Shown here: one piece after another, positions 2,806 through 28,477 of the stretch
Layout of the letters: each line of letters begins with the position of its first letter
Position numbering within the stretch: the stretch's first letter is position 1
Origin: Bispira polyomma
Taxonomy: Eukaryota
Assembly: GCA_965649765.1 (NCBI GenBank)
Contig: OZ287753.1
Location: 20,088,001 to 20,152,000, forward strand
DNA: 64,000 bases
Reading direction: 5' to 3'
Position numbers and translations under genes: made by a program
Notes under the pieces: model-generated
Database searches by the model: none
The model's input: only the letters and a program-made list of their open reading frames with translations
Told to the model about the DNA's origin: nothing

Positions 2806-4240
2806 ATGGAGGACCAAAAGAATAAGGCAGAGAATTCCGATGTTGTGAAGTTTGAACAAACACACGATGTAAGCTCAGGGGAGAACAAAACAACAGATGG
2901 GAATAGATCAAACATGAACAATTCAGGTGAAAGTGGAGACACTGGACGTAGTATTCGAAGTGAACTAGTCACAACAGGTGCAGTCACCAAAGAGGAAACA
3001 GTAGAGATAAACCTGACTTCTGGGAGAGAGACAGGATATAATAAGTCTACATTGGTAGATAAAGATAACACAGATAATTGCAAAGATGAAACACCTGGAA
3101 TTAATTTTGACATTACATCCAGTGCGGATAAGCAGAGGTCTGAAAGTTTAAACATAGTAGTGAACATGGATAATCAGGATAAGACCCAAAGTATCAAAAC
3201 TGTAGAGAGTAGCAAGTCTGAAACTGGTAAAACAGAAGATACACATACAAAGGAAAGTGGTCTGCAACAGAATATACAGAGTGATGAGAGCACTAAAGTG
3301 TTGTGTCATGGGGATTTGGCTAAAAATGACAACAGTCAAAGTGAACCTGATGCAAAGTTAGATGGAACAAAGCCAGAGGAGGATGAAGCAACATATGACA
3401 AAGAAAAGGAATTGCAGGGGGATATAGATATCAAAGATGGCAGTACTGTTGTTTTAGTCCAGGAAAAACAATTGGATAAAAATGATAACACTCAAACTGA
3501 AAGAGATGCCAATCTAGATGGAAGAAATGTGGAAGAGGGCAAAACAACAGAGAATAAAGAAAGTCGGCTGCAATGGGATGTACAAAATAGGAGTTGTGAA
3601 GTGTCTGAGGAGAAAACATCAGTTAAAAATGACAATGTACAAACTGAAAGGGATGGAACTCTAGATGTAAGAAAGTCTGAGGATAGTGAAACAACAGCTA
3701 ACAAAGAAAAGAGGTTGCAAGAGGATGGACAAACTGAGGTTAGCAAAGTATCAACACAGAAAGTATCAGATGAACAGAAGGGACTCAAAGATACAACAGC
3801 AACAGTGCAACACTTTGAAGAGATGTACAAAAAGTCAAATGGAGATGAGGAAGCTAGTGTGATGAAACCAACAGAAGATAGTGTGGTAGTAAAAGATAGA
3901 AGTAAAACTGCAAAGCTCCATCAAAGCAGTGAGAACTTGGATGATAGCATTAAAGCAGAGGGTAGTGTTATGGACAGTGTGACTATGGATGACGTGAAGG
4001 AGGTTGACATGGACTCTCCATTACCAGAAATAACTGGCATGGTGTCCAAACCCCAGGAGATGCCACAACCTAGCTCCTTGAATGACAATAATGATGACTT
4101 AGAAGTAAACAAGGATTGTGTGGTGAAAAAGAAAGTGTCACCAGAAATTGTTAAAGTCCGTACTGGCCTGTGTCCCTTTGATGAATTACCACCATTGCCA
4201 AAGAAAGTGGTGCGGATATTTGTGAGTTCAACATTTACCG
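2806..4240 (+). CDS. Paralog A exon 1 (acidic low-complexity N-terminus plus start of DUF4062)
   Basis: ATG preceded by in-frame TAA; ends ..SSTFT G|GTAAGT. Confidence 0.85.
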
Positions 4241-5987
4241 GTAAGTAATTGGATGTATTTGACATACACCAAAACCGCATTGATCATTAACGTTTAAAAT
4301 TGCTTATTTAACTGTTAATACACTATAAATGTCAAAATGCTGTGGCATAGACGGTGCACTTGCTGAAACTCAAAGTGGTAACAGTTAAAGTTTTGGTAAC
4401 ATTAAATTTTTTTTTAAAACACACCAAGGGCAATTCTGAAGTTAGTGAATTATTGTCTGGTACAAAGCACAACTATTCAGATAATTGATACAAAATAATC
4501 AATATGTATTGATACTAGCTGTAAGTATAGTCAAACAAAACTTACAAGAAACCACCTCTGAATAGAGACTGTCTCTTTATAAACACTAGCGTGCAAACCT
4601 CTACCAAGGTGCCAAACATATCTGCACCCTCCACCTTTTTGGAATGTAAATGTCTTGCATGTCTTTTTAGATGTAAGTGATCATAAGTCAACTAACTGAG
4701 TGTATCGGATATGTACTTGAACAATTCTAAGGATACCTTTAAAGAGAAGTAACCAGGACTATCTCTTAATGGCTTATAAACCAAATCTATAAATATTAGG
4801 TAGGAAGAACAAAATATTATAGTTTGTTCTTTTGACTCAATTTCATCAAGCCCAAATATTAGTTTTTAGTGTTGTAGGTGAGTTATGTGATTCATCTGAG
4901 ACGAACACAATTTATGTTAAAAAGATTCTATTTCAGATACAAAAGAGGAAAGAAATGCTTTGATGCAGTATGTGTATCCCAAGTTATCTGACTATTGCAG
5001 AGAAAGACATGGTCTAGATTTCCAGGTATGGTGATGGCTGAGCTTTTTTTATGAACTTATGAATGTGACTGAAACAACAAATAACCCAATTTATTGCTTT
5101 TAGTATGCAATTCATGAACTGTTACAGAATTTATATATCTATTTGACAAATATCACTCTTTAGATAGGAATTCATGGAATAAAATCCCTCCTAATTACAG
5201 TAATTGAGTTTATCTCTGGTTGTTATATGTATGTTTTTATGTTGAAGCGTTTTACATGTTTGAGGAATTTGGATAAATTTTTAAAATACAGTCAAACTCG
5301 GAATCTCCACTGGTCCCTTGATCGACTGAAAGGGGTTCAACTCAGCTTTTTTTTTACATGTTGTCTATTATGAAATATATTCTAAAATCTATGCTTCTAT
5401 GATATGTGTATTTTATCTTGTACAGATAGTTGACATGCGTTGGGGAGTACCAGAACAGGCATCTGACAATCACACAACTTCAGAACTCTGTATACAAGAG
5501 ATAAAGAAATGTCAAGAAGTCTCTGTGGGACCAAACTTTATGGTAATGTCAAACCTAATATATTTTTTTATATACTATATTAAAAATACACAGAAATTGG
5601 TCAAATATACTGTTCGAAGCCAGGGAAACACCAATTTTAATAAATTGAACTTTTGCCAACTCACACACGTAATAATAGATTTTTCTGCTGACATGCATAA
5701 CTTTTTTTACATTATTTAAAACTTCAAATAATGAGCATTTCTTTGGCTTAACCAGGCAATTGTAGGTGACAAGTATGGCTACAGACCAGTGCCGAGGTCT
5801 GTGGAGGAAGGCCTGTTTCAGACTCTAACATCATCAGAAGTTGACGGATGGCAGTTAGTTGAGGAGTGGTATAAGAAGGATACAAATGCAGTACCAGCTA
5901 TCTACATTCTTCAGCCAATCAGTTCAAAGATACAACATTATAATAACCTGGTGAGACACATTATTATTGAGCATTTATATAGAACCC

Positions 5988-6038
<51 letters not shown>

Positions 6039-9000
6039 CTCTAAGGTGCTGATTGCCCAAAAGCGAAGTTTTACAACACAAAGTGGGTCATCATCAATAG
6101 GCAATGACTTGTTCACATCTTTCCCATTTTGTTCTACGCAAATTGACCTAGCGGCCTTAGCAGGAATCAAACCATGTAGCTTCAAATTACCAAATCAACA
6201 CAAAGTATAAAATACCCTTGGCATTATATTGCCTCTTAATATTTGTAGGTTACAAGTGTTATCACCATTGTAATTGCTAGTATTTAATCAATTGCTAGTT
6301 CTAATTTCTAAAATTTACTTTGATCACCCATTCTTTCTCTTCAGAGGTTATATGTGAACTGACCGAGATGTTGCAACATTTACTGATATTAATAACTTTA
6401 AGACTACATCTATTTCGAGGCAATGTAGAAATCATATAGAAGGTATTATTTACTTATACAATTTAAAAAAAATGTTAATATGTTAATTTAGGAAAATGCT
6501 GAGTTAAGATATGAGGCTTGGAATCAGTGGAACAGGGAGAACCAACAACTGTCCATAGCATTACGAGCGGCAGCAGACAGAGCATACGAGAGAAAGAGAA
6601 TCAATTCGGCAGACAAACAGCTGTTTTATATGTCAGGTAAACAGACGTTGTTGACATGTGTACTTTATTTATTTATTTTAAAATATCTTGTATTTTTTTA
6701 CATCGACATGCATGGATATAACACTTAATATCTTAATATCTGTATAGTCCTGTGAATCTATCTTGCTCATTACATACACAGATCAAGACTTTTCTTTGTT
6801 ATTTCAACAAACCATGCAGCTATCTCACACCACAGTTTGTTGACAGGTTAACAATAAAGATAGAATTTGACACTATATTATCAGTGAAATAAATCCTGTG
6901 GTCTGTCTTATATTGCATTTCTATTACTTTTAAGGTCATGATGAAATGTTCTTGTGTCCTCACATATATGTTTTTATATGTGTATCAATGTTGTTTTTTA
7001 TTTTTAGTGACTGAAAATGAAATAACTACTGGTGTTATAGAAGGGAGCAATGATCCGTCTGAATCTTGCTACTGTGTTATAAGGAAAATAAGTGACGTTG
7101 ATCGACATTTAGATGAAGGGAGAGCGCCAAGGTTTTTGGATATGGATCAAACTAAAACAAGAGATACTGAGGCAAAGACACTGTTAGATGACCTTAGAGA
7201 GAGCAAACTGAGGCGGCACATACCTGAGGCCAACTTAACAGCTCTGGACATAGAGTGGTCTGTCAGTGGAGCCTGCATGTCAATAGAAAAGTGTCAAGAT
7301 GTACAGGTATTAAAGTTTGCCCAAAGGTTTTTTAAAGAGAAAAAGATGGGCTTGTTGAAGCACAAAGAATACTTAGACAGCCTTTGCAATGATGTATTTG
7401 TAAAACTGCATAGACTCATAGAAGAAGGAACACATAAGCAGACAGAAATGTATGATGATTTGACTACTGAAATACTACAACATTTCCATTTGGCCAAAAT
7501 GAGGTGCGATGTGTTCGAAGGAAGAGAAGACATTTTATGTGAGATACAGAAGTACCTGAGTCAACAAGACACATCATGTCCATATGTTGTGTATGGAAAA
7601 TCTGGTTGTGGAAAAACATCAGTCATGGCCAAGGTTTTTGAAAGTGCGTCAAACCAGGCATATACAAATCACTGCAACAGTTGCTTTACTGTTATTGCAA
7701 GATTTTTAGGCACTTCAACAAAAACATCCAACGTTCATCAGCTGTTGGTTTCTATGTGCATGCAGCTGTCAGCAATATTTGAAACACCATGGAAAGAACC
7801 AGAGCAGTTTACGGAATTAGTGAAATCATTTTACCGATTACTCGAAAATGCAACTTCCACAAAGCCAGTACTTCTGATTTTAGATTCTGTAGACCAACTC
7901 ATGCCAATTTATAATGCATATAAGCTTTTTTGGCTCCCAGATGAATTCCCACCAAATGTAAAGTTAATTGCTTCAACGATTGATGAAGGTTACAATATAC
8001 TCGATGCATTCAGAGAAAAGTATGAGTCCATCGGTTTGAAAACAACTGTGGTTAACCCTCTTGGAGAAAAACTAGGTTTAGAAATTATTACAAGATGGTT
8101 AAAGAAAGATGGTCGCCAAGTTACTGAAAGCCAAAGAAGTATTGTTCAAGAAGTCCTGACAAAGTGCAGTCTCCCACTATATGCTAGGATTGTCTATGAC
8201 CATGTTAGAAAATGGAAATCATTTGACGTGCCAGCAGTTGAGCAGTTAGAAACCACCATTAAAGGGGCTATTAATAAGCTTTTCCAGCAAATGGAAGAGA
8301 AATTTGGGAAACATCCAGTCCAGCACTGCCTGGCCTACCTGACTAATTCAAGATATGGCCTCAGTGAAACAGAATTAGAACATATCCTGTCACTTGATGA
8401 TTTGTTGCTCAATAAGATATTTAAGCTTTGGAACCCACCAGTGAGAAGAATTCCAGCTCTGATTTGGACAAGAATCCGTGCAGACATACACAGCTACATT
8501 GTTGAAAGATCTGCAGATGATCAGCTGGTCTTATATTGGTATCACAGACAGTTTATACAGACCACTAAAGAAAGGTATTTGGCAGACAGCGAATTTGCAA
8601 ATCACATTAATGAGATACTGATTGACTATTTTAGTGGAAAGTGGGGCAGCGGGAAAGAGAAGCCCTTTTTATACACAGATTCTCAGATGAAGAGATTTGG
8701 GTTTGAGAAAGCAGAAAGCAAGGCAGATAGAAAAGTTCCAAGTCAGCCATACTGGATTGAACATACAGTGCCTGGAAATTCAGAAACTAGATATAACAAA
8801 CGAAAGTTATCTGAACTTCCTTATCATTTGCTCAGGAATAAGGACTTTGAAGAGTTAAAAGAACAGGTTTTCTTTTCATTTAAGTGGTTGTATGCCAAAA
8901 TGAAAAGCACAAGTGTTCAACAAATGATTGAAGAGATAGATATATTCATGAGAGCAGACAAAATACTGAAAAAGGATGCTGAAATGAAACTAATGTATGC

Positions 9001-12000
9001 CAATTTACAGCTCATAAGACCATACATACTCGTGTATCCTGATTCCCTTTCATACGAGTTATCAGGAAGATTAGCGAAATATATTGGCAAATATAAGCAT
9101 ATCACAGATCTAATTCAACAATGTGACATTATGGGTAGAAATTATTGCCCTTTGATACCACTAACCACATGTTTTGAAACAGCAAGTTTAGGTTTTCAGC
9201 AAAACCTGAACTTCCGATCTAAGGAACCATGGCATCAAGGTGGTACGTTCACTAGCTCTCCTGATTTCAGAACACTATATGTGTTGGATTACAATGAGGA
9301 AGGTTTGCCTTTAATATCTTCCTGGGATGTGGACAGAGGGGAGAAAATTAATGAAGTCCTCATTGATAAAGTGAAAACTGATGAACATAAATTCACTACT
9401 GATCTGTACTTTCAAGCAGAATGTACCAAAGGTGGTAAGGAGTTGCTTGGCTTCTATAAGCAAAGAATGGATGCAACATATCAGAAAATAGTGAAATCAG
9501 GTTGTGGTTTAATCGACGTCATCGATTTAGAAACTGGCAAAGTGAAGTCCACATATGACACATTTTTGTACAGGGATGAATTTTTCAACCCACTCTTCTA
9601 CCTTACAGATAATTTTATGTGTGTTGCCCACGGTTGGAAAATGCCATTGATAAATTACACTGAAGATAAATGTCATAGTTACAATAGACCTACATTAATG
9701 AGTAGGAATGAGAAGTTTTTCATAATGTGTGGAAAAGATAAAACTGTGCTGCGTCTGTTTGAAACAAAACAGGTTGTTGCAGAATTTGAAACTCCTGAAT
9801 ATCAAATTTCAGTAACAGCATCAGATGATTTCTCTGTTATAGCAATGATGGGTGCTGAAACAAAGGATATCAGCATCTTTGATCTGTCAAATAAAGTGGA
9901 TAAATTAAGTGAGAAATCTGTCCAGTTCCTTAAAAGTCGGGTTGTCTTCAATCTGGATGGTAAAACTGTTGAATTAGTATCATCTGTGTTCAAACCTATA
10001 TTGGAGACTTTGGAAAATGGAAGAATACAAGAGAAAACAAACAACAGAGTCATAATGCAGATCAGCCCAGATAAGAGGCATTTGATGGTTGTTTTTGTTG
10101 GATGGAAATGGATGGCATTTTTGTGGAAAACAGTGGGGAAGTACAGTGCCAGATTTGTGGGTAAATACAGTGCTAAGTTTGTTGGACCAATTACTCCTCA
10201 TCAAATGCAGTGTAGCAGCAGGTACCCTATGTTTAGCTATGATAGCATTGCTCTGATATACACACTGAGGAGGAGAAAGATCCTGATTGTCTCCACGGAC
10301 ACTCTTGAAGTAACAAATGAGTATATGATGAAAGAAGACATCAAGGACATATGCATATCTAAAGTTTCAAACAAAGTAGCTGTCATGCTTCAGAAGAGCA
10401 TAATGTTACTCAATGTAGTCAGAGAAGATGAAGAGGTGACAAAAGGGAAGTGCAAACCTGGGATGACTCAACTGACCGAGGTGCTTTTACCGCGAGAGAT
10501 CATAAAGGGAGTGGTTCATTCTGAAATCATCCAGAGAAATATCAATGACATTACAGAGCTGCAAGAGGTATGTTTAAGTGTATAAATCTAAAAACATTTT
10601 TGGGGGCTGTTAGTTCTGATGTTAACATTATTCCTTGAACCCAGGAGAAATGAAGGTTTTGCGTTGTTACAATAAGCATGCATATGTATGTCTAATACAT
10701 TTTAGTATTGTATGTGTTACCTATTATGACATTTAATTATATGTATATTGTAATTAAATTTTTATACTGAGAGACTATCAAAATACAATAAAATAATCAG
10801 AAAATAGTATAAAAGTCACTGTTCCAAGACCATTCTTATAAATCTATTTGTGGTAAGAACAATATTATAGGCTGTGTGGCGTCATACTCTGTTAATGATG
10901 TTCGAATGGTATAATTAGATCAAATTTGTATCCGCTTGTATTCCAACATACTGTAATTTATGTATAAAGCTGTAGTGAAGGAGTCTATTAGTAGTGTGTG
11001 TAATAATCATTGACAGATATAAACAAACATTGTACGTGAATAGACACATTACTATTGACTGGTTGCTAATAGACAAGGTAATAAAATCATAAAACAGTAC
11101 ATTATAGAGTTACATATATAAAATATTTTAATAGATTTACATACATGTAGGTGCTATTTTTACAGATTGGCGATATTTCAACAGCAGCAAATACAGACAG
11201 AATAGCATCAGCAAGAAGTAGGTCTAAGGAAGCAGTGGCAAAGTACTATACACCAGATGGTTATAGAGTTCTTCACCTTCACAAAAAAGCACAAGTTATA
11301 GACACGGTACAGCAAGATATTATATATACACCCAAACCAGGAGACACAATTGCAAGAAGTTTTACAGCTAACGATGGCACAGTGGTCAATGAGAATGTAG
11401 CAATACCTGATATGTCATCTAAATTCCATAGTGGAAACAGATTAGCCGACAGTTCGATGGAGAAAATGGACCGAGCAATGAAATTCAGTGGAAAGAATAT
11501 GGAAAGAGAAAATATTAAGGGTGAACTATTAAAACCTATTCTATCAGAGAAAAATTTGGCTAATACAATTAACTTAAGACAGGGTGACCGTATAGTTAAT
11601 GAAAACAATAGAATTAAATTCAGAATGACCACTGAAACTGAAGGACAGATAGAGGTTATGGTAGTGCCATCTGTGATCACAGTCTATGCAGTCGAAGACT
11701 TGAAGCTGAAGAAGCTGCAGAGAATTACAGTGTACCATGAGGTTGTGCTTGATATTAGCAATTCTTATATGGCAACGTCCAAGACAAATACACTGGGACA
11801 TTTTGTAAAGGTTTATGAACAGGCCAGTGCAAAATCCCTTGCGGTTCATGAAATGGCATTTGCATGTGAGTGTGCTAGATTTTCTTCAGAACAAGAGCAC
11901 CTGTTTGTAGTTGATCGTTCGCTAACCGTAAAGCAAATGCTGGGCCCCCAATTTACAGGGGTTCTAAGGAAGTTTTCTCTTATGGATCAAGAGCTGTCAG

Positions 12001-13289
12001 CTGCCTTTGTTGTCAAAGATATAATGTTGTTTGAAATCAATGAAAGTGCAGTCTTAGTCAGCTATGGCCCGGAAGGTCCTGGTGAATTTGTGACTAATAG
12101 GTATATCTTTTATGACTTCACTTCCAACAAGAAGTCCAAAGAAATGAATGTGTCCAGGAGGCTTGAAGATGTCTCTTGTGATGGCAAATTTGGTGTGGAT
12201 ACCAGCCTAACTGTTTATGTATTGGAAACTGGAATAGTGTTTTCTCAAATAGCCATGAATAGACAACAGATAGACTTTGGGGGTGTAATTGAAAGAAGAA
12301 TCAGATACACAGATGCTGCCATGGCAAATGAAAGGAGAGCAAGAATTAGTGATGATAACAAATATCTTGTGTATATAAATGCCAATGAAGGAACTCTTCA
12401 TGTGGTAGGTATTGGTAGAAATCAGTTGAAACCTTTGACCTCGTGTTATATGCATGCCCAAGCGATACTTGCTGATCATGGATTTTCCCTCCGGCATCAT
12501 GGCACTGTACTTCTTCTGAAAACTGGTAAAAATATTATGCCAATGGCTCTTGCGCAAGACAAAAATCGTGGCTATTCCTACGAATCAGAATATGAAAGAG
12601 CTCGTTCAATTGTTGCAAGTACAACTTGGAAAAGTTTTCCAAAAGTCGAGAAAGTGAAACTTCCCAGTGTGTTCGAACAAAGGAAACTGTTTATGCAACA
12701 GGAGGACAGTGTTAAGCAGAAAGAAATGTCAAAGAACTTGGATAAATACAGCAGCAAACCATCAGTACTTGTGCTGGGAGAACCTGTTCTTTGCTCTAAT
12801 ATATTCAACAGCGACTGGTTTTCGCCAAACCTGAACACTCAGAAAATGAGTGTTCAAAACGTTGACGATGCCTTTGAAAAACTGAAAGCAGACTCGGCCA
12901 CATACGATGTAATGATTCTACAGCTTATTACGGAAGATGTGACTATGTATGATGTTCCCGTTTGTGTGAAGAAAGTGAGTGTCATCATAGAACTGGCTCG
13001 ACAGAAGGCCCGAATAGTAGTGCTGTCTTATGCTCCCCTAAGGGCAGACAGTAAGGAACTCAGTGACAAAATCACCGAAGTCAATGACAAACTAGGTGCC
13101 ATCTATGTCTCCTCGTGTGGAGAAGGTAGACAACTGCACATATGTAAGAACAGCAATCTCAGTGAAGGAGGCAAACAGGTAGCAAGGTTCTTCAAAGACG
13201 GTGTGCAGCTATCACCAGCAGGACTGAAGAAAATAAGTGAGAACTTTAAGCATGTCTTGGCACCGTTACTGGGTCTTCACCATATATAA
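2806..13289 (+). CDS. NWD1/NWD2-like: NACHT and WD-repeat (NWD1/NWD2-like) STAND protein, paralog A; 7 coding exons, ~2554 aa; DUF4062-NACHT-beta-propeller-SGNH-like
   Basis: Exons 2806-4240, 4937-5025, 5426-5542, 5756-5950, 6492-6636, 7008-10567, 11166-13289 are all GT-AG and phase-consistent (7665 nt). Motifs: RIFVSSTFTD..ERNALM..YPKL..GLDFQIVDMRWG (DUF4062); Walker A GKSGCGKTS (7595-7621); Walker B LLILDSVDQL; GLSETELEHILSLDD; LYWYHRQF; YNKRKLSELPYHLL. Confidence 0.9.
4937..5025 (+). CDS. Paralog A exon 2 (DUF4062)
   Basis: tttcag|..DTKEERNALMQYVYPKLSDYCRERHGLDFQ|gtatg. Confidence 0.9.
5426..5542 (+). CDS. Paralog A exon 3 (DUF4062)
   Basis: tacag|IVDMRWG...VGPNFM|gtaatg. Confidence 0.9.
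5756..5950 (+). CDS. Paralog A exon 4
   Basis: ccag|AIVGDKYGYRP...WYKKDTNAVP...HYNNL|gtgaga. Confidence 0.9.
5992..6034. repeat. (TA)n microsatellite
   Basis: Direct read. Confidence 0.95.
6492..6636 (+). CDS. Paralog A exon 5
   Basis: ttag|ENAELRYEAWNQW...LFYMS G|gtaaac; same 145-nt length as the paralog B exon. Confidence 0.85.
7008..10567 (+). CDS. Paralog A exon 6 (NACHT, helical/winged-helix region, propeller)
   Basis: tttag|(V)TENEI...LQE|gtatgt inside ORF 6938-10585. Confidence 0.92.
11166..13289 (+). CDS. Paralog A exon 7 (propeller plus SGNH-like C-terminal domain)
   Basis: tttttacag|IGD... to TAA; phase 0 matches the exon 6 donor. Confidence 0.88.
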   Translation: MGDISTAANTDRIASARSRSKEAVAKYYTPDGYRVLHLHKKAQVIDTVQQDIIYTPKPGDTIARSFTANDGTVVNENVAIPDMSSKFHSGNRLADSSMEKMDRAMKFSGKNMERENIKGELLKPILSEKNLANTINLRQGDRIVNENNRIKFRMTTETEGQIEVMVVPSVITVYAVEDLKLKKLQRITVYHEVVLDISNSYMATSKTNTLGHFVKVYEQASAKSLAVHEMAFACECARFSSEQEHLFVVDRSLTVKQMLGPQFTGVLRKFSLMDQELSAAFVVKDIMLFEINESAVLVSYGPEGPGEFVTNRYIFYDFTSNKKSKEMNVSRRLEDVSCDGKFGVDTSLTVYVLETGIVFSQIAMNRQQIDFGGVIERRIRYTDAAMANERRARISDDNKYLVYINANEGTLHVVGIGRNQLKPLTSCYMHAQAILADHGFSLRHHGTVLLLKTGKNIMPMALAQDKNRGYSYESEYERARSIVASTTWKSFPKVEKVKLPSVFEQRKLFMQQEDSVKQKEMSKNLDKYSSKPSVLVLGEPVLCSNIFNSDWFSPNLNTQKMSVQNVDDAFEKLKADSATYDVMILQLITEDVTMYDVPVCVKKVSVIIELARQKARIVVLSYAPLRADSKELSDKITEVNDKLGAIYVSSCGEGRQLHICKNSNLSEGGKQVARFFKDGVQLSPAGLKKISENFKHVLAPLLGLHHI

Positions 13290-15335: not shown

Positions 15336-17391
15336 GTCACGATTACCACTGAACCTTTGACATTATAGTCTTTCAAATAGGAAGCCATTTGACAAATTTC
15401 GAATTGACTGGATCAAGTATTGCAGATTTCACCAGATAATTCGAGATTTTCGTGACATTTCATTAATTGTCCATTGAAGTTAATTCCGCCAAGAATTTAT
15501 ATGTATTGTTACACTATTGGAATTCTTTGTAGAATTGTCCCTGCTTCAGTAGGCTTTCTTTCCAAATTGATTTTCAAATTCATGACTTGCACATTATTCA
15601 AAAATTTAAGACAAGCGAGAATTGTTGCTTTCAGATGCGGTGGAAAAGAATATTTCGTTGCCGAATACAACGATAAAATGTGAATATAATTATCAAATAG
15701 GCTATTTAAGCAAAATATTGTCCGAAGAAACATCTGGCACAGATTTTTAATTCATTCTTAGTAAGGCGTAAAGTGTTCAATTGATCATTCCAGTTTTACC
15801 TCATCAAATAATCGACTATAAACTCCTTTTTATTAGTTTTACGTTGCAATCTTAATTAATGTTGAAAATAAAGGATATTTTAAAGCTCTGCCTGCTTCTC
15901 TAAATAATTATATTTTATTAAATAATCTATTTACTATTGTGACACAGTAAAACATATTCTAAACGAAGAAGATATAATACACAGCCATAAAAGGCTTATT
16001 TGTCACTATTAATCATAAGAACGAGCAAGTAACATATTTCTGATACAAGGTCAACCGATAATTTGATTATTATTCGAGAATCTGATCCAAAATATGTAAG
16101 AGTTTTCTTTATACCCAATTTATTAGAACTATTGACTCGAATACTATCTATACACAACAACACCAAAACAACGTCATAGATTTCCTCATAACTATTAACA
16201 AGTATAGGCCCTTTTATGTGTGGATATTGTGTAATTACTTTGATCCAGAGAGGACTTGTCAAATAGATCAATGATACCAGTACTTCTCCTGGCTTACTTG
16301 GAAACGTGTGTATTATTTTTTGTGTGTACATTCAGTACTATGCATAGCAGAAGTACATATATAAAGCCGGTGAAAAATACAGGAATGATGGAAAACTTGT
16401 GTTAAAACTCTCCTAAGTTTATAAGCGAAATTAAAGGAATATTCATGGCAAGTATAAATTTAACAAATACCTTCAAGGCATTCAGTTGTATATGTTAACA
16501 ATTGTTAATAGAAATATGAATAAACATATATATATAGGTCACATGACGTCACTTTTGTAAGAATTTTAGTTATAGACGGCACAGTCATTGTAATATGACA
16601 ATAAATGGTAGCTGGCTTTACTTGTCACATCTCACAAAATATATCTTTATTTTAATGTTTTATAATTGTCCACATAAGAATAAATGTTGGGACAGTATTA
16701 TATGACTATCAATTGTAGTAACATTGTGGTATATGTACAATACCAGGCATTATATAATAAGGTGCAAATATTCATGTCGATTTTTTGATGGAATTAGATC
16801 TAGTATCATATATAAGCTGTATATAGTTAAGAAAGAACGACAAAAGTCTGTATTACATTAATTATATTAATTCTGATTCGGATTTCTGTTAACATAAAAC
16901 ATATTCTTCAGATAAATTGTGTTCTGGACTAATCTGTTCGTCCTTTTTATTCAAACATTTGATTATATGAATTTTATCAATGGACAAATATCTACATCAC
17001 TAGGTTATTATTGTACTTAACTTATTAAAAGTCGCGGAGAAATAGAGATGTCTTAATTTCAGTAAAGTGAGAGAACATGACATAAGTTAAAAAAATTTCA
17101 TATTTCAAAATTGACAAGTGGGTCTTCTCTTATGAAAATAATTATAAAGAAAATATAATAGAAAAGGTTTTTAACTGTGATAATCTTACATCATCTTTTG
17201 GAAAAGTGAATAATGTTTTTTAAATATTTTACTTACAGGTACAAAATATCTAAACCCATAAGGATCATGATAACCAGATCTGCAATAATACCTTTCTTTT
17301 TGCAGAAAAGATGCTGTGTTTTAAAATTTAGCTTGGCAGTTCAATATAAAATGCCATTGAAGGACAACTGGGAGACGGATCACGGTTGAAG

Positions 17392-18553
17392 ATGGATACA
17401 GTGTCTGAGGATAAACACCCTGTACATAGTGCTGAAGAAAGGATAAACAAAGATAAAGGGAAAAGAGATGACCATGTCAAAGAGATAGATACTCCAAAAG
17501 TTGATAAAGACATAGGTGTTAGTATAGAAGTCAGTGAACCTGATCTAGAGATCAATGGTATAGAAACTGTACAGACAAAAGAAGAGCTTCAACCAGATAC
17601 TCCAAAGGTTGGTGGTGATACAGGTGTTGGTAAAGAAGTCAGTGAACGTGAACTGGAGATCAGTGGTGTAGAAACTGTACAGACGAAAGAACAGCTTCAA
17701 CCTAATACTCCAAAGGTTGGTGGTGATACAGGTGCTGGTAAAGAAGTCAGTGAACATGAACTGAATATCAGTGGTGTAGAAACTGTACAGACAAAAGAAC
17801 AGCTTCAACCAGATACTCCAAAGGTTGGTGGTGATACAGGTGCTGGTAAAAATATCAGTGAACGTGAACTGAAGATCAGTGGTGTAGAAACTGTACAGGC
17901 GAAAGAAGAGCTTCAACCAGATACTCCAAAGGTTGGTGGTAATACAGGTGTCGGTAAAGAAGTCAGTGAACATGAACTGGAGATCAGTGGTGTAGAAACT
18001 GTACAGAGAATAGAGCACCTTCAACCAGGTTTGGATCAGCCAGAACTAGAGAGTAAGGAGCAGTTCAATGAACAAAGAGCATCTTCTGAATATAAAACAG
18101 AGATTACTAAGGAAAATGACAAAGAAGAAAAGGTTGGGATTACAAATGAAACAGAGATAACAAGAGAAAAGATGGCCATGAAAGATAGTGAAAGTAAAGC
18201 AAAGACGAAAGGTGATATAAAAATAGATATAGAGATGAACGATAAATTGGAAGATTTGGGTGATAAAAGAAGCAAAGGGTCTAGAGGAGACATTGCGACT
18301 AATAACAGGGTGGCCAAGGCAGTAGATATGGACATTCCTTCTCGGGACATTACTGCAACCCTGCCGGTACCCAAGGAACAAAAAACTGGTAGGGATAATG
18401 GAAAGAATGAAGACTTAGAAGTAAACCAAGAGAACCAGGCAAGGGTTATTGCACCAGAGATCCTCAAAGTTCTGACTGGTCTTTGTCCATTTGATGAGCT
18501 CCCACCGTTGCCAAAGAAAGTCGTCAGGATATTCGTCAGTTCTACGTTTACGG
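17392..18553 (+). CDS. Paralog B exon 1
   Basis: First in-frame ATG after the in-frame TAA at 17347; ends SSTFT G|GTCAGT. Confidence 0.85.
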
Positions 18554-21500
18554 GTCAGTAGTGTCCTGAGATTACTATATGTTTAGTTTGTGAGCCTTTG
18601 TCATGTTGTATTCCTCAGTAACCAGTCCCCACAGTATGAGCTAATGAACCATAAAGCCCACAAATACTGTAAAAATGGGCATTTTAGCTGGGAGGACATT
18701 TCTCTAAATTACAATTTTTCAGATATTTATATGATCCTTTCTGACCTCAGCAGTAAACGTTTTATAGATTGCGGTTTATATCAATTAAATATTTATCGCA
18801 CAGTTCACATTTTCCCCTCTGCTATCCCAGTATATCTCTTTTTTTTGTGCCATTTCTTGATGTGACTTCCTTTCCCAGGCAAGTATTCATATTGGTAAAT
18901 GTTTTTAGGTAAACAGCATTCATTTAAGTAAGGCATTGTGACATTATTATAATTATTATTGTAAACAGTTTTATAGTTGTACTTTGCTGTTTTACATAAA
19001 CACAATACATAGATGTAGTGGATTTATATTTGTGATCAGACACCAAAGAAGAAAGGAATGCTTTGATGCAGCATGTTTACCCAAAGTTGGCTGACTACTG
19101 CAGAGAAAAACATGGTTTAGAATTTCAGGTAAAATCTCTCAAGTTTATCAGTCTGCAACAAGAATTTACTGATCATTTGATCATAAGATAACCTTTATTT
19201 CTATAATTTAGCATTTAATGCCCATACTCTGTTCTCTAATGTCACATTTTTTGGCTTCTGACACTGTGACCGTGTTGTTAACACACTGGCTTTAGAATGC
19301 AGCCCAGTCTCCAGCTTCCTGACACAGGCAGTTACATAGTGGCTGGTTGGCTCTACTGGTTTAGGCATGAAAAGTTAAACTTAGAACTTTAAATCCCAGA
19401 TAGTAAGAAGATATGTGCACAGGAGTATTGATATCAGTACAAATGTATTTAAGATTTGCTTGTGAGATACAACAAATAACATCCCCTTTCAAAAGAAATA
19501 GATATCACTAATGTTGTTAAATCATGTGTGGGACATATAATTAGATGTTAATTTGAGAACAGTGGGTTTGACTCCCTCAGCTTCCTTCATTCGGGAAAGC
19601 TTGCCAAGGACTTGTCCTTGATTGATGGTTTCGCGTAAAAGTATGACTATTTTTTCCACCAATAAATCTGACTGTCACAATGTAACCAAATATACTCATA
19701 CATGACGTAAACTGAAATACATTCAAGTAACTTAATCACCTTCATTATTGTATCTACCACAAAATCTTAGTTGTTCAAGTCCTTTCATCTTGTAGTTCCT
19801 CGTAATATTTGATTATTATTAATAGCAGGCTGTTCAAAATGTTGTATACTAATTTGGTATCTGATGAATTCATAGGAATAGATATTTTTGGTTTCTTTTT
19901 GGATCGGTCATAAAATTTTATCTATGGTGAAATTTATGAAACTATGCTTTTATGATATGTGTATTTCTGCTTTCCACAGATAGTTGACATGCGTTGGGGA
20001 GTACCAGAGCAAGCCTCTGACAACCACACAACTTCAGAACTCTGTATACAGGAGATAAAGAAATGTCAAGAAGTCTCCGTGGGACCAAATTTTGTGGTAA
20101 TTTTAACGAATTAAGAATATTTAAATAATTAAAGAATAGCAGATGTAATACTCTTAATGGACTATAGATACTGAATTGAAGACTAGATCATAAGAGTTAC
20201 ATACATATATTATATGATATTCAAAAAAATATTTCATAGCTCAAACTTCCTCCAAATTTGCTCAAATAATTTAGCTATACTTATTTTGGGGTGGTATCTG
20301 GAGCCCTATTCACAAATATTTTAAGTGTAATTCTTAGTCTCACCATAAACAATTTCGTTTATTTTGCTTAGTATTTTTTTACTTGTTTTACAAGAATAAT
20401 TCTTTATTTAAAGAAGATTCTTAGAAAATGCAAAAAAAAATATAGAATGATTAAGAGAATTCCCTATTCTTAAAGAACTTTTAAAGTATATAGAATTGGC
20501 CAAAGTAATGCAATTTATCTTACTTTTATTATACATTACAATCATTCCCATATAAAAAAATGAATGTATTTATTTTGTGCACTCATTGTGCACATGGCAC
20601 ATAATGTGAAAAACGTGTAACTATATATTAAAAATAATATATTTGGTTATTGAATTTTAACAAAAAGACACACTTTACACTTTCGCATGTTAAAATTTCA
20701 TAGTGTTTAAATATATAATTAAAATTGCGCAAATATTATGACTGGGGCACTTCCATAAAGTGTGTTTGTACTTGAAAATAAAAAAAGAATAATTCTATGC
20801 TTAAAATAAAGTTAGAATGTTTGTGAATAGTCTTTCCTCATGTCCAGAATAATTCTATACAAAAGAAACAGAAACATTCTTATTCTTAGTAAAGAATCTT
20901 TGTGATTTGTGAACAGGACCCTTGATGTATATGAATTGTTCACCACATTTCAATCTCAAAAATGACAATGTATATAACTAGTGTTTTATATTTTAGGCAA
21001 TTGTAGGTGACAAGTATGGCTACAGACCAATACCAAGGTCTGTGGAGGAAGGCCTGTTCCAGACTCTGGCATCATCAGAAGTTGAAGGATGGCCGTTAGT
21101 TGAGGAGTGGTATAAGAAAGATACAAATGCAGTACCAGCTGTCTACATTCTTCAGCCAATCAGCTCAAAGATACAGAACCTAAACAACATGGTCAGTATA
21201 CAAAGAATTAAAACACTAAAAGACACTTTGTCAAATTTTTGATGCAACTTGGCCAAACAAGACCAAGATATGGTTTTGATAAAATTGTGATCAGAGGTTT
21301 GACTGTACAAACATTTGTGTATTGTAGACATTACAGTACTTTATCTTTGTAAAAACTAAGTGATCACATGCTAAAAAAGGCAGTTTTTTGTACTGGTTTG
21401 TCTGTACCTCCAGGGTTATAATCAGATGTAACTTTATTATTAATTTCAATTGTTTTTTGAAAGAAAAAAGAAAACAAAAGCAGATCTAGAATGTCTACCT

Positions 21501-24500
21501 TTATAAAGGTCATTTGGTCAAAATTTTATATCAGACAAACTGACTAAGGAACAGCTTTGATTAAAAAACAGGTCAGCTTACCAGTGATTTATGATTTCAT
21601 TTATCCTTATCTAAAGTTTTTCAAAACTCCATGGTATCCGATGTAATGATTCTGTGATTTTTACCCAATTATGTCAAAATGGGTGATGATTATAGTGATA
21701 AATTAATTGGCAAAATATGAACTAATGCAGGTTAACATATGGATTTTGGTTCTCACACTCATTTAGGAAAATGCAGAGTTAAGGCAGATAGCTTGGGACG
21801 AGTGGAGCAGAACCAGCCAGCAGTTATCTGTTGTACTAAGAAGAGCAGCAGATAGGTGTCATGAGGAGAGCAAAGTGAACTTGACACAGAAACAACTTTT
21901 TCATATGTCAGGTTAGGATTAACAAAATGTCAAATACTTGAATAACATTCATGGAAAGTTCAGATGACCTTCTACAGTATTTTTGTGGTCATTTAATTCA
22001 AAATATGACCATACAATATGTGTTAGACATAATACAGAAAAAATATAAAAATATAAAAAATGTACAAAATATAACTGATCTTATGAAGTTTCTGCAACTA
22101 GATAAAGGCAATATTTTGGCAGTTGTTTAAACAATAAGTATTTGATAAATTTAAATTATTTTATCATTAGTTTTTAAAGATCTTGCGATGCTTATTTGGT
22201 TAATCACAAATAACTGTTTTCATCAATTACAGTTACTGAGAATGAGATAACTGCTGGCATCACAGAAGGAAGAAGTGATCCATCTGAATCATGCTACTGC
22301 GTTATTAGAAAGATTTGTGATATTGAGCATCATTTAGGTGAGGTCAAGGCCCCAAGATTTATTGATGTGAATCAAGAAAAAGCTAAAGACGTGGAAGCAG
22401 TTACACTTCTGGACAATCTGAAAGAGCGTAAGGTAAAACATCACATTCCCCAGTCAAATGTAACAATGTTGGACATTGAGTGGTCAGCCAGTGGTGCTTG
22501 TATGTCACTGGAAAATTATCAGGATGTGAATGTTCTGAAGTATGCTCAAAAATTCTATAAGGAAAGGAAAATAGGATTGGCTAAGCATAAAGAATACATC
22601 GACAGCTTCTGCAATGAATTCTTTGCAAAGATACGTAGGCTAATCAGGGACGGGAGTATTAAACAGATGAAAATGTACAATGATTTGACTACAGAAATAC
22701 TGCAGCATTCCCATCTGGCTAAGATGAGATGCGATGTGTTCGAAGGAAGGGAAGACATTCTGTCTGAAACCAAGAACTATTTGAAAAAGAAAGATACTTC
22801 TTTCCCCTTGGTCATATATGGAAATTCTGGTTGTGGAAAAACATCGGTGATGGCTAAAGTGTATGAAAATGTCTCAAACAGGCAGGATACAAATTATCGC
22901 CATAACTGCTTCACGGTTGTGGCCAGATTTCTAGGAACTTCAACAAAGACATCGAATGTTCACCAGTTGCTAGTGTCCATGTGCATGCAACTTTCTATCA
23001 TATTTGAAACACCGTGGAAAGAACCACAACAGTTTTCAGAATTAGTGAAATCGTTTTATAGGTTGCTAGAAAATGCTACTCCTCTGCAGCCAATATTACT
23101 GCTCTTGGATTCCATAGACCAGCTTATGCCAGTTTACAATGCCTATAAACTCCACTGGCTCCCAGATGAATTTCCACCAAACGTAAAGCTCATTGCTTCA
23201 ACAATTGATGAAGGATACAATATACTTGGCGCATTTCAGGAAAAGTATGCATCTGTTGGTTTGAAAACAACACAAGTGAACCCACTTGGTGAAAAGCTTG
23301 GCTTAGAGATTATACTCAGGTGGTTAAAGAAAGACAGCCGGCAGGTTACTGATGGCCAGAGAACTACTGTTCAAGAAGTACTTACTAAGTGTAGTCTCCC
23401 GCTGTACGCTAGGATTGTCTATGACCATGTACGGTTGTGGAGATCATATGACATCCCAACAGTTGAGCAGTTAGACACAACAGTGAAAGGAGCCATTAAC
23501 AAACTGTTCCAGCAGATGGAGGATAAATTTGGAAAGCATCCTGTACAACATTGCCTGTCCTATCTCACTGCTTCTAGGTATGGTTTGAGTGAAGCAGAAC
23601 TGGAACATATCTTGTCTCTGGATGATATGCTTTTGAATAAGATATTCAGACTGTGGAACCCCCCAGTAAGAAGGATACCCCCCTTAATTTGGACACGGAT
23701 TCGCTCAGAAGTTCAGAGCTACATCGTTGAAAGGTCGGCAGATGATCAACTTGTGCTGTACTGGTATCATCGTCAGTTCATCTTGACAACAAAAAGCAGA
23801 TATCTTGCAGATAGTGTGTTTTCAAGACATATTACTGACACTCTGATTGAATACTTTAGTGGTAAATGGGGTGGTGGGAAAGAAAAACCTTTCATATACA
23901 CAAACTCCCAGATGAGGAGATTCGGACTGGATAAGCCTGAGAGTAAAGCCGACAGGAAAGTACCAAGTCAACCCTACTGGACTGAACACATCAGTTTTGG
24001 CAAGATGGAAACCAGATACAATAAAAGAAAATTGTCTGAGCTGCCATATCACTTACTTAAGAATAAAGACTATGAACAGCTTAAAGAACAAGCATTTTTT
24101 TCTTTTGAATGGCTTTTGGGGAAAATGAACAGTGCAAGTGTTCAACAGATGATTGAAGAAGTTGACATATTTATGAGAGCAGACAAAGTCATGAAACAAG
24201 ACCCAGAAACAAAATTGCTGTATGCAAATTTGCAACTTGTGAGGCCATATATCATAACATACCCAGACTCCCTTTCTTACGAGTTATCAGGAAGGTTAGC
24301 CAAATATGTTGGCAAATATCCACACATTACAAGTCTCATGAAGCAGTGTGACTGTATGGGTGTGAACTATTGCCCTTTGATACCATTAACAACATGCTTC
24401 GAAACAGCAAGTTTGGGTTTTCAACAAAACTTCAAATTTCGCTCTAAAGAACCGTGGCATGAAGGAGGAACTTTTACATGCTCGCCAAATTTTAAAACGC

Positions 24501-27500
24501 TGTATGTGTTTGATTACAACAATGAAGGATTGCCTGTTATTTCATCGTGGGATGTAGAAAGTGGGGAAAAGGTTCATGAGATCCTCATTGAAAAAGTCAA
24601 GAGTGAAGAGTTGAGATTCACCACCGACCTATACTTACAAGCAGAATGTTCCAAAAGTGGGAAGGAGTTGCTTGGATTCTACATACAGAGAATGGACACA
24701 ACCTATCAGAAGAAGACAAAACCAGCATGCCATTTTACTGATGTCATTGACGTAGAAAGTGGCAAAGTGAAGAAAACATATGAAAGCTATTTTTGGAAAC
24801 ATGACTATGTCAACCTACCTGTCTATCTCACTGAGAATTACATGTGTATCACCCATGGATGGAAGAAGCCTTTGATCAATTTTACAGATGACAGATTTAG
24901 TAGTTTCAACAGTCCAACTTTATTGAGTGCAGATGAGAAATTCTTTATCATGTGTGGCAAAGACAAAACTGTACTGCGTTTTTTCGAGACCAAAGAATTT
25001 ATTGCAGAATTTGATGTTCCAGAACACCAGAAAGCTGTTACTGGTTCAGATGATTTCTCTGTGATTGCAATGATGGGTGCTGAAACAAGGGACATATCTA
25101 TATTTGACCTTTCAAACAAGTTGCAAAGATCGGGTAAAGAGGGATATCAGTTACTTAAAAGTAGACATGTCTTCAAGTTAGATGAAAAAACTGCAGATTC
25201 AGTAGCTGTTGTGTTCAAACCTGTTCTAAAAACTTTAGAAGATGGAAGAATACAGGAGACAACCAGCAACCGAGTAATCATGAAGATCAGCAAAGACAAG
25301 CGGCATTTAGTGGTCACTTTTGCTGGATGGAAATGGATGGCTTATTTGTGGAATTTAAATATTGACAAATACAGCACTAAATTTGTGGGCAAGTACAGTG
25401 CTAAATTCGTTGGGCCTATTACACCTTTTAGAATGCAGCCCTCTAGTAGATATCCAGTGTTCAATCATGACAGCTCAGCCTTAGTTTATTCGATGGGGAA
25501 CCGGAAAGTGTTGATTGTTTCTGCGGATACCGTTGAAGTAATAAATGAGTACGACATGAAGCAAGATATCAAGGATATCTGTGTATCTAAAGTCTCAAAC
25601 AAAGTGGCAGTGCTGCTCCAGAAAAGTGTACTTTTGCTTGACGTCATGCGGGATGGGGAGAGTGTCATGAAAGGAAAGTCAAGGCCCACTGTCACCCAGC
25701 TTACCGAGGTGCTGCTACCTCGCGAAACCATACATGGGGTGGTGCAAAGTGAAATAATTCAGAAGACTTCCGATGAGAGTGTGGAGCTTGAAGAGGTATG
25801 CTACTATCTTGATAAATATGAATATATGCCGAATGTTACTATATTCTGATGCTTATTATCACACGGGTCAATTTCAGAAAAATCTAACAATAAGTACAAT
25901 ATTGCTGTACTATAATGCTATAATGCTAAAAATGAATACATAGTTAGAGAATACAAGAACATATTTTGCATTTGAACATTAGTTTGTTGGTAGAAATTTT
26001 AATGGGAAGAGAGATGTAAATTCTTGCTCTCACATAATTACATGATTGGTACATCCATAATACACTTATAGTATTCATTGATAGTTTCTGTAGTTCAATA
26101 ATCATAATTGAGAAAAACAATGGGACTGAACACTTAAAAAGAACCACTTTTAACACACAAATGTATGACAGCTTTACTTATTATTTTGTCGGTTATAAAA
26201 TTAAAGGGAATGTAAATATAAATTACTTTTAGTTAAAAAATGTACATAAGCGAACAAAAGATCTTGACTCATGGCATGTCCTCTAGATTGAGTATACTTA
26301 ATTTGTAAGGGTAGTGCATTATAATGTTTTTGCCATATGATTTACAGATAGAAGACCTTGCACTGGCAGCAGACACAGACAGAGTAGCATCAGCAAGCAG
26401 TAGGTCTAGTCATGCGGTGGAGAAATATTACACTCCAAATGGACTCAGAGTTCTTCACTTGCACAGAAAGGCACAGGTTATTGATACAGTACACCAAGAC
26501 ATTAAGTATTCTCCCAAAGCAGGAGAAACTATTTTGAGGAGCATTGTGTCCAAAGATGGAGCAACGGCAAACGAGGTTTTGCCCATACCTGATGTAAGTA
26601 AAAGAGTATCTAGTGGAAACAACATCTATGAAAATGATGGAGAAAATTTTGACAAAGCGATGTTGTATGGCAGGAGGCATATACCCAGCCACAAGGAGAA
26701 TTTGAAAGAAGAACTACTGAAACCAGTTTTAACTAGGAGCTTATCAAAGAATGCAATTATTTTGAGGCAAGGTGACCGGATTGTCAATGAAAACAACAAA
26801 ATCAAATTCAGAGTCACAATGGAATCTGAGGGACAGCTGCAGGTGATGGTAGTACCATCTGTGATAACAATATATACAGTTGAAGAGATGAAGTTGAACA
26901 AACTACAGAGGCTTACAATGTATCAAGACACAGTGATCCATGTTGGCAATGCTTATTTTGTGACCGCTAAAACAAATTCTTTGGGGCATTTTGTCAAGGT
27001 ATATGATCAAGTTAGAGGAAAATCTCTGGCAGTGCATGACATGCTATTTCCTTGTGAGTGTGCACGGTTTTCGGAGGATGAAGAATGCTTGTTTGTCATT
27101 GATCGTTCTCTCACTGTAAAAGTGCTTCAAGGTCCCCATTATATGGGTGTATTGAGAACATTTTCTATTATGGAGGGGGAGTTGTCTAGTGCTTTTGTTG
27201 TCAAGGATATAGGGCTGTTTCAAAATAACAAAGATGCAATATTAGTCAAATATGGCCCAGAGGGACTGGATATATTTGTGAGAAGTCGATATATTTTCTA
27301 TGATTTTATTTCAAACCAGAGATCAGAGGAAATGAACGTTTCTAGGAGATTTGAAGATGTGTCCTGCGATGGTAGATTTGGTGTCGACACTGAACTCAAA
27401 CTGTATGACCTTCAAAGTGGGAAAGTATTCGCCGAGGTAACCAGTCATAGTCAGCACATTAACTATGAAGGTATCCTTGAGAGAAGAATCAGATACACAG

Positions 27501-28477
27501 AAGCAGCTGTGGCCAATGAAATGATTGCGAGAATAAGTGATGACAACAAATATGTAGTCTACTTAAACAAGAATGAAGATACGCTGCATTTGCTTCACAT
27601 TGCTGGAAGAAAGTTACAGAGAATTGCATCTTGTTATGCGCATGCTCCAAATATCCTGCCTGAAAAAGGGTTGTCATTAAGATACAACAGTTCAGTGGCG
27701 CTACTGAAAGCCAGTAAAAGACTCATCCCCATTGCCCTTGTTCACAGCAAACGCCAAGATTATTCTTATGCGACTGAGTATGCGAGATCAAAGTCTATTC
27801 TGAGCAGAGTGTACAGGAAGGATACCGAGAGAAGTGTTCCAGTCAAGCTACCCAGCATATTTGAACAAAGGAAATTAATGTTGCAACAAGAAGATATGGT
27901 GAAACAGAAAGAAGTAGCCAAGAAACTGAGTAAATCACACAAGCCATCTCTGCTTGTTGTAGGTGAACCTATCCTTTGTTCAAATATCTTCAAGTCTGAG
28001 AAGTTTTCTCCCAATTTGCTCACCAAGAAGATGAGTGTCCAGAACGTGGACGATGCCTTTATCAAACTGAGGGCAGATACTCTTGGCTATGACGCGATCG
28101 TTTTACAGCTCATCACAGAAGATGTAACGATGTACGATGTAGCTGTCTGTGTAAAGAAAGTAAGTGTCTTGGTGGAAATGGCTCGGCGGAAAGCCAGAGT
28201 GGTCATCATCTCGTATGCTCCCGGTAGGAGTGACAGTAAAGAGCTCAGCGATAAAATCAGGGAGGTCAATGAAAAACTGGGCAAGATTTACACTTCCTCC
28301 TGTAGTGGAGGAAAACACCTGCATTTCTGTAAGAACAGCAATCTTAGCGATATCGGAGGGAAGCCCATAGCGAAGTTTTTCAAGGATGGTGTACAGCTAT
28401 CGGTTCTAGGAATAAAGAAAATCTGCAAGAATTTTAAGGAAGCATTGGCACCACTACTTGGAGTGCATCACATTTAA
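17392..28477 (+). CDS. NWD1/NWD2-like: NACHT and WD-repeat (NWD1/NWD2-like) STAND protein, paralog B; 7 coding exons, ~2466 aa
   Basis: Exons 17392-18553, 19040-19128, 19980-20096, 20997-21191, 21767-21911, 22233-25795, 26348-28477 (7401 nt). Same intron positions and phases as paralog A; Walker A GNSGCGKTS (22820-22846); Walker B LLLLDSIDQL. Confidence 0.9.
17488..18028 (+). repeat. Coding tandem repeat, 108 bp (36 aa) x ~5
   Basis: Unit (D/N)TPKVGGDTG(V/A)GKEVSE(R/H)ELEISGVETVQTKE(E/Q)LQP. Confidence 0.95.
19040..19128 (+). CDS. Paralog B exon 2
   Basis: DTKEERNALMQHVYPKLADYCREKHGLEFQ|gtaaaa, 89 nt as in A. Confidence 0.9.
19980..20096 (+). CDS. Paralog B exon 3
   Basis: IVDMRWG...VGPNFV|gtaatt, 117 nt as in A. 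Confidence 0.9.
20300..20922. mobile_element. Probable MITE in intron 3 of paralog B
   Basis: Imperfect terminal inverted repeats CCCTATTCACAAAT ... ATTTGTGAACAGGACC around an AT-rich interior; similar termini at ~45437 and 58410-58786; this intron is much longer than its counterpart in paralog A. Confidence 0.45.
20997..21191 (+). CDS. Paralog B exon 4
   Basis: AIVGDKYGYRP...LNNM|gtcagt, 195 nt as in A. Confidence 0.9.
21767..21911 (+). CDS. Paralog B exon 5
   Basis: ENAELRQIAWDEW...LFHMS G|gttagg, 145 nt as in A. Confidence 0.85.
22233..25795 (+). CDS. Paralog B exon 6 (NACHT etc.)
   Basis: ttacag|(V)TENEI...LEE|gtatgc; includes ORF 22367-25849. Confidence 0.92.
26348..28477 (+). CDS. 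Paralog B exon 7 (propeller plus SGNH-like domain)
   Basis: tttacag|IEDL... to TAA. Confidence 0.88.
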   Translation: MEDLALAADTDRVASASSRSSHAVEKYYTPNGLRVLHLHRKAQVIDTVHQDIKYSPKAGETILRSIVSKDGATANEVLPIPDVSKRVSSGNNIYENDGENFDKAMLYGRRHIPSHKENLKEELLKPVLTRSLSKNAIILRQGDRIVNENNKIKFRVTMESEGQLQVMVVPSVITIYTVEEMKLNKLQRLTMYQDTVIHVGNAYFVTAKTNSLGHFVKVYDQVRGKSLAVHDMLFPCECARFSEDEECLFVIDRSLTVKVLQGPHYMGVLRTFSIMEGELSSAFVVKDIGLFQNNKDAILVKYGPEGLDIFVRSRYIFYDFISNQRSEEMNVSRRFEDVSCDGRFGVDTELKLYDLQSGKVFAEVTSHSQHINYEGILERRIRYTEAAVANEMIARISDDNKYVVYLNKNEDTLHLLHIAGRKLQRIASCYAHAPNILPEKGLSLRYNSSVALLKASKRLIPIALVHSKRQDYSYATEYARSKSILSRVYRKDTERSVPVKLPSIFEQRKLMLQQEDMVKQKEVAKKLSKSHKPSLLVVGEPILCSNIFKSEKFSPNLLTKKMSVQNVDDAFIKLRADTLGYDAIVLQLITEDVTMYDVAVCVKKVSVLVEMARRKARVVIISYAPGRSDSKELSDKIREVNEKLGKIYTSSCSGGKHLHFCKNSNLSDIGGKPIAKFFKDGVQLSVLGIKKICKNFKEALAPLLGVHHI

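Follow-up and report, generated by a model that had tools for sequence, protein, structure and literature searches.

STAND/NLR proteins are modular, and the domains at their C-terminus set what they sense. To our knowledge, in animals these domains are nearly always LRR, WD40 or TPR repeats. Binding folds without catalysis are wired to immune switches in amidase-dead PGRPs, glucanase-dead GNBPs and the integrated domains of plant NLRs. The present study deals with two tandem paralogous genes, A and B, found on the + strand of a 64,000-nucleotide stretch of contig OZ287753.1 of Bispira polyomma (genome of 1.03 Gb); this stretch is hereafter called the window and provides all coordinates given without prefix. 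Both genes are predicted to encode an NWD1-like STAND protein in which a WD40-like beta-propeller is followed by a catalytically dead domain of the SGNH (GDSL) hydrolase fold, hereafter called the tail. STAND receptors and dead SGNH folds are each known. Their combination, in which a pseudo-enzyme of retroelement type is integrated into a STAND receptor, appears to be new: the literature searched described no SGNH domain in any NACHT or NWD1-like protein. Dead-enzyme recognition modules and plant integrated domains resemble the tail in logic but display no homology to it, and an immune role of the receptor is conjectural.

Three described groups of SGNH proteins were relevant for comparison. 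The esterase of ZfL2-1 ORF1p (PDB entry 4c1b; Schneider et al. 2013, PMC3905857) shares the SGNH fold with the tail, as well as a subfamily signature composed of a block III with a hydrophobic residue followed by T-N-D, S-L-x-P-x-R-x-D, C-D-N-x-N-L and D-G-x-H-L-S-x-x-G. Its catalytic residues are S143, D279 and H282, with N195 and G165 lining the oxyanion hole (PMC3905857). The binding of phosphatidic acid, phosphatidylinositol phosphates (PIPs) and liposomes by this esterase does not depend on the active site, mutants still binding acidic liposomes, and self-association of ORF1p is attributed to the coiled coil, not to the esterase (PMC3905857). In contrast to ORF1 esterases, the tail has its Ser, Asn and His replaced, lacks a coiled coil or PHD N-terminal part, and is fused to an intron-bearing host NACHT-propeller protein that occurs in low copy number under purifying selection. 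Oskar OSK and insect PAF-AH alpha homologues are closer to the tail in that their SGNH folds have lost catalytic residues and are used in binding (PMC3905857). Yet, none of 12 tails matched Pfam OSK (PF17182) at E<=1, and they occur without a LOTUS domain and in a STAND NTPase context. PAF-AH Ib alpha (1wab, 1vyh) was among the top structural matches of the tail (Z ~19.8, root mean square deviation (rmsd) 2.7 Å over 169 residues) and functions with the WD40 propeller protein LIS1. It differs from the tail by its low identity (~15%), by being an active enzyme and by pairing with its propeller in trans, whereas the tail does so by fusion.

According to the structural model, the last ~177 residues of A (12756..13286, +, stop codon at 13287-13289) constitute a genuine SGNH (GDSL) hydrolase fold. 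The AlphaFold2 (AF2) model, built from an alignment of 51 relatives (A2), reached a predicted local distance difference test score (pLDDT) of 91.9 and a predicted template modelling score (pTM) of 0.83, and displayed the three-layer alpha/beta/alpha fold, with a parallel sheet of five strands, superposable on solved SGNH enzymes. All top Foldseek matches were SGNH proteins (PAF-AH Ib alpha, GDSL-like lipases, sialate O-acetylesterase and TesA, with E 1e-8 to 1e-5, template modelling score ~0.7 and probability 1.0), and VIA structural alignments on SGNH enzymes gave Z scores of 19-20.5 with rmsd 1.9-2.7 Å over 165-170 residues. Likewise, a language-model feature search independently pointed to GDSL clusters. 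A receiver or TIR-like fold was ruled out, as the strong structural matches were all SGNH enzymes.

At the sequence level, Pfam and plain PDB searches with a single tail found nothing useful, so that routine annotation would miss the domain, and only two orthologs came back when the entire last exon was used in a word-based protein search. A phmmer search with the tail against 1.84 billion representatives gave 51 matches at E<=1e-3, the farther ones having intact GxS / TND / DGxHLS motifs. A profile restricted to receptor-linked tails (A3) reached solved SGNH proteins in PDB at E 6e-5 to 3e-4, and hhalign of the receptor tails against 26 catalytically intact relatives (alignment A4) gave a probability of 100% (E 1.1e-41, 178 columns). 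Protein P0048 exceeded the Pfam Lipase_GDSL_2 gathering score. The preliminary description of this locus had noticed a resemblance of the tail to SGNH blocks I, III and V and proposed an SGNH fold from it; by phmmer and hhalign the resemblance lies far beyond chance, and the fold was recovered by structure prediction and Foldseek.

The open reading frame (ORF) of A ends with ...KPSVLVLGEP...DVMILQLITEDV...VVLSYAPLRAD...EVNDKL...NSNLSEGGK...FFKDGVQLSPAGLKKI...LHHI. Six residues were invariant among the 26 intact relatives: Gly and Ser in block I, Asn in block III, and Asp, His and Gly in block V. At these columns, A and B displayed G-E-P (Ser to Pro), I-T-E-D (Asn to Glu) and D-G-V-Q-L-S (Asp kept, His to Gln), in agreement with the losses of the nucleophile, oxyanion and catalytic His residues that had been claimed for A. 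As judged from its sequence, the tail cannot hydrolyse by the canonical SGNH mechanism, since Ser, Asn and His are replaced at invariant positions. The same G-E-P was found in block I of P0001. His was absent in 14/14 members of the receptor clade, with Q, N, C, T or I instead, and Asn was lost in all of them but one. Ser was replaced in 5 of the 11 clade rows covering block I and was kept in the copy on contig 14 of the same genome as well as in P0002, P0003 and P0004. The Asp was also lost in P0054, the ortholog of B in another assembly. This pattern suggests that loss of the base preceded that of the nucleophile.

Upstream of the tail, the predicted protein is related to NWD1/NWD2-type STAND proteins. 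All searches were run exon by exon. The large exon of A (6938..10567, +, 1210 codons) covers a NACHT P-loop NTPase, an NWD1-type winged helix, an APAF1-like helical region and the first part of the propeller; its donor GT lies at 10568-10569 and its 5' acceptor slightly inside the open frame. Both NACHT (PF05729, 37.8 bits vs a cut-off of 26.7) and the HTH_NWD1 winged helix that follows it (PF25469, 56.9 bits vs 27) scored above Pfam thresholds, and a weak THOC3 propeller match was also recorded. The terminal exon (11166..13289, +, 707 codons, inside ORF 11151..13289) begins with ~530 codons (11166..12755) for a WD40-like beta-propeller (exon residues ~134-461) and a long helical linker (~475-528). 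In the AF2 model of this exon (ma81ba4d81a1e), pLDDT was 80-90 in the propeller core and low in loops and linker, and the propeller matched Atg18/WIPI, WDR5 and other propellers by Foldseek at E ~1e-10, a similarity of fold level only. No Pfam WD40 model matched in the exons of A. A and B thus depart from NWD1/NWD2-type proteins by the SGNH pseudo-enzyme added after the propeller, and by the fact that Pfam WD40 and DUF4062 remained unmatched.

The N-terminal part was the least clear. A putative first coding exon of A (2806..4248, +) has a long acidic low-complexity N-terminus, ends with ...RIFVSSTFTGK and gave no Pfam match at the curated cut-off. A putative small exon in open frame (5399..5719, +, ...IVDMRWGVPEQ...), also without Pfam match, may extend the N-terminal domain. 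The motifs RIFVSSTF and DMRWGV of these frames resemble the start of DUF4062, by motif only, as DUF4062 (PF13271) matched neither the exon pieces of A nor anything here in a whole-genome scan. Of the DUF4062-NACHT-propeller receptor put forward in the preliminary description, the NACHT domain and winged helix (by Pfam) and the propeller (by model) therefore stood, whereas the DUF4062 part was left without support exon by exon. If present, DUF4062 would correspond to a TIR-like NADase module known in the NWD1 family from a recent study, in which human NWD1 and NWD2 were inactive in vitro (bioRxiv 10.64898/2026.05.01.722283). Long acidic low-complexity frames occur 5' of each NACHT exon (2806-4248 and 17386-18561, both +) and are probably variable N-terminal exons of A and B; the second displayed a sub-threshold DUF4772 match only and none at the curated Pfam cut-off.

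The NACHT exon and the tail exon are separated in A by a GT...AG intron (10568..11165, +), read from the sequence. Its junction runs from ...CAA GAG/GTATGT to TTTTACAG/ATT and joins ...ELQE to IGDISTAAN... in frame and in phase 0. In B, the equivalent junction (...LEE/IEDLA...) was found at 25795/26348, between the exon for NACHT and the NWD1-type winged helix (22367..25795, +, identified by Pfam, donor GT at 25796) and a last exon (26348..28477, +) which, by comparison with A, comprises propeller, linker and dead SGNH tail (~27941-28474). The last exons of A and B were 62% identical overall and 73% in the tail, with the three substitutions identical. Further, the last ~250 residues of the large exon of A aligned with the first ~280 of P0004 (E 6e-27), a paralogue from another assembly that carries the junction-flanking region and the tail within one uninterrupted 958-codon ORF. 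Since this single ORF spans both sides, intron positions vary between paralogues while the protein is continuous. The splicing of exon 7 to the NACHT exon assumed in the preliminary description is thus supported at the sequence level, and the two exons are best regarded as parts of one predicted gene.

The same organization was observed beyond the window. In the genome, a NACHT ORF with NWD1-type winged helix was followed by a tail exon at four loci, namely A, B and one locus each on contigs 14 and 9. A search of other assemblies recovered the NACHT and SGNH architecture, in the same order, three times in assembly ERZ22147071 and once in run SRR20820736, there on a single contig. Each of the four copies had its own ortholog in the second assembly. 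As the proportion of synonymous differences (pS) between species was saturated (~0.69), the paralogues predate the split of the two species. In the tail, A and B differed by a proportion of non-synonymous differences (pN) of 0.165 vs a pS of 0.738, i.e. a ratio of non-synonymous to synonymous substitution rates (dN/dS) of ~0.06; this ratio was ~0.075 between A and its ortholog. Overall, pN of the tail ranged from 0.13 to 0.17, dN/dS was <0.1 where computable, and the tail was more conserved than the rest of its exon. All four NACHT-linked copies were intact, and the substitution patterns indicate that the tail family is kept under purifying selection. Its best conserved motifs (LQLITxDV, CxNxNLSxNGKP and DGVxLSxxG) surround the former active site.

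A fifth copy of the His-less SGNH domain stands alone on contig 9 (L006:1480-1758 (+) and L005, G000:C9:45275812-45278188). It is split by an intron of ~1.8 kb, contains one in-frame stop and resembles the 181-aa protein P0003. No large NACHT ORF was found in the ~4-14 kb scanned upstream of it.

A kinship with the ORF1 esterases of retroelements, proposed earlier on motif grounds, was found both by profile comparison and by genomic context. The best PDB match of the family profile was 4c1b, the ZfL2-1 ORF1 esterase (E 3e-12). Intact relatives with informative context were retroelement ORF1 proteins beside endonuclease and reverse transcriptase (RT) ORFs. An EEP+RVT_1 ORF2 comes after both P0053 (RNase H1 N-terminal domain, PHD and esterase) and P0030 (PHD and esterase), P0013/P0053 and P0030 adjoin EEP/RVT ORFs, and P0011 (phmmer E 1e-11) is flanked by Cauli_VI/PHD and EEP ORFs. 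Other relatives began with a coiled coil or with NADAR, as is typical of ORF1 proteins. Identity between the tail and any intact retroelement esterase found was 25-35%. The tail itself, in contrast, occurred in NACHT-propeller fusion at every full-length locus and in only 5-6 copies in 1.03 Gb, which does not fit membership in a retroelement, and no RT or endonuclease ORF adjoined gene A or gene B.

Several elements bearing on this kinship were recorded in passing. In P0012, P0018, P0021, P0029 and P0048, a single ORF joins NADAR to an intact SGNH esterase, in some cases along with RNase H and PHD; these proteins probably represent another type of retroelement ORF1. In the genome of B. polyomma, a long interspersed nuclear element (LINE) at L050:692-4737 (-) (G000:C3:71872691-71876736) consists of an endonuclease/RT ORF and, downstream, an intact 189-codon SGNH ORF (Lipase_GDSL_2 36.3 bits, OSK 30.9 bits). 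This position of the esterase is unusual for a LINE, and several decayed copies exist elsewhere in the genome. The only LINE found in the window (50737-57159, -, i.e. on the strand opposite to the tail genes) is broken into three ORFs (endonuclease, RVT_1 and zf-RVT) and has an upstream 407-codon ORF without Pfam match; it was rejected as a local donor because this 407-aa ORF does not resemble the tail.

In a maximum-likelihood tree (50 rows, fragments <140 aa left out, unrooted), the His-less tails formed one clade with supports of 100/99, a configuration requiring one change in 200/200 bootstrap trees. Esterases are widespread in retroelements (PMC3905857) and the tail family is rare, which makes a capture from a retroelement the parsimonious scenario, and we infer a transfer from retroelement to host.

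Our preferred explanation, which we consider probable, is that a retroelement-type SGNH domain was captured and fixed as the catalytically dead, non-catalytic binding C-terminal module of an NWD1-like STAND protein. The fold, the homology, the residue losses, the single clade, the constraint and the conserved architecture rest on data; the direction of capture, the binding role and any link to immunity are what we infer from them. Most likely, an SGNH domain of the ORF1 esterase family (LINE CR1/L2-like elements or NADAR-bearing ORF1s) would have been captured once from such an element and fixed at the end of a protein reading NACHT, NWD1-type winged helix, WD40-like propeller, helical linker and dead SGNH. 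The family would then have been duplicated, reaching at least four loci and a further copy that stands alone, and retained under purifying selection. An esterase-shaped tail with lost catalytic residues is probably a binding module. What it holds without turnover may be an ester-bearing lipid, an acetylated ligand, a protein partner or the surface of a membrane. The conserved motifs around the former active site favour a pocket that still binds such a lipid or an acetylated ligand, and the ZfL2-1 active-site mutants that still bind liposomes provide a precedent for binding without catalysis. WD40 domains gate oligomerisation in APAF-1-type STAND proteins. Together with its propeller, the dead esterase might likewise gate oligomerisation of NACHT.

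Several observations weigh against this explanation or parts of it. The gene A is a predicted one, its exon structure and splicing having been read from genomic DNA, and the putative N-terminal effector DUF4062 was unconfirmed by Pfam. Among the matches of the receptor-only profile, 4c1b does not stand out. Among retroelement esterases, the sister of the dead clade was not settled (supports 46/19 and 73/89) and the tree is unrooted, so that retroelement capture is parsimonious, not proven. Finally, the isoelectric point (pI) of the tails ranges from 5.1 to 9.5 and their net charge varies widely; a uniform charge-driven membrane-binding surface is therefore not supported.

A more specific proposal is that this animal STAND/NLR-like family domesticated a retrotransposon ORF1 esterase as a dead sensor or decoy for retroelement or viral activity, or for an ester-bearing lipid or glycan ligand; it is tentative and, on balance, doubtful. 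Among the alternatives to a captured non-catalytic binding module, the one that survived best is an integrated decoy or guard: the tail would mimic an ORF1 esterase, and the receptor would engage retroelement particles, or a pathogen factor targeting such esterases, and switch on. Such a receptor would be analogous to plant NLRs with integrated domains, and the reading would suit a tail whose nearest intact relatives are retroelement ORF1 esterases, in a genome where SGNH-bearing LINE copies are present. It is nevertheless unlikely. At 25-35% identity to intact retroelement esterases the tail tracks no current element, the selection acting on it is strongly purifying and not diversifying, which is atypical of an arms-race decoy, and self-association of ZfL2-1 ORF1p goes through the coiled coil and not the esterase (PMC3905857).

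Quite improbable is a membrane-targeting or purely regulatory module without ligand of its own, which would localise the receptor to acidic membranes or pack on the propeller or NACHT for auto-inhibition. The active-site-independent binding of phosphatidic acid, PIPs and liposomes by the ZfL2-1 esterase (PMC3905857) would be compatible with it, as would the long helix joining tail and propeller in the AF2 model and the action of PAF-AH Ib alpha, a top fold match, in complex with the WD40 protein LIS1 (1vyh being among the matches). The wide pI range of the tails speaks against this module, however, and the strongest conservation, at the former active site, suggests that the pocket region itself matters. 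As for an annotation artefact, in which the tail exon would belong to another gene, or be what is left of a decaying retroelement, and merely lie downstream of a NACHT gene, the gene model is indeed read from genomic DNA and a stand-alone, intron-split copy of the domain does exist elsewhere in the genome, but a single 707-codon frame shared with a propeller that continues the one begun in the NACHT exon, a phase-0 GT/AG junction conserved in A and B, an ORF (P0004) carrying both junction sides, the NACHT-to-tail order at eight loci, the lack of stops with dN/dS <0.1 and the absence of adjoining RT or endonuclease ORFs at A or B make it very unlikely, close to negligible.

The window is GC-poor (~35%). 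A TA-rich microsatellite at 5990-6050, in an intron of A, reads as (YI)n in several frames. Near both NACHT genes lies a HELZ2-like gene (46111-50232, +). Its ORF of 1373 codons encodes an RNB exoribonuclease domain (247 bits) together with an OB fold of the HELZ2 type.

In the family described here, the domain integrated into an animal NLR-like protein is not a repeat but a globular pseudo-enzyme of probable retroelement ancestry, located behind a propeller and conserved across paralogues and species. Since the tail escapes Pfam, surveys of NLRs probably record too few such architectures. The family also offers a testable case of a transposon protein exapted into a putative innate-immune switch, and its tail may inform what CR1/L2-type ORF1 esterases bind. 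If the tail is indeed a domesticated sensor or decoy, it would be the animal equivalent of an integrated domain in a plant NLR, donated in this case by a transposon.

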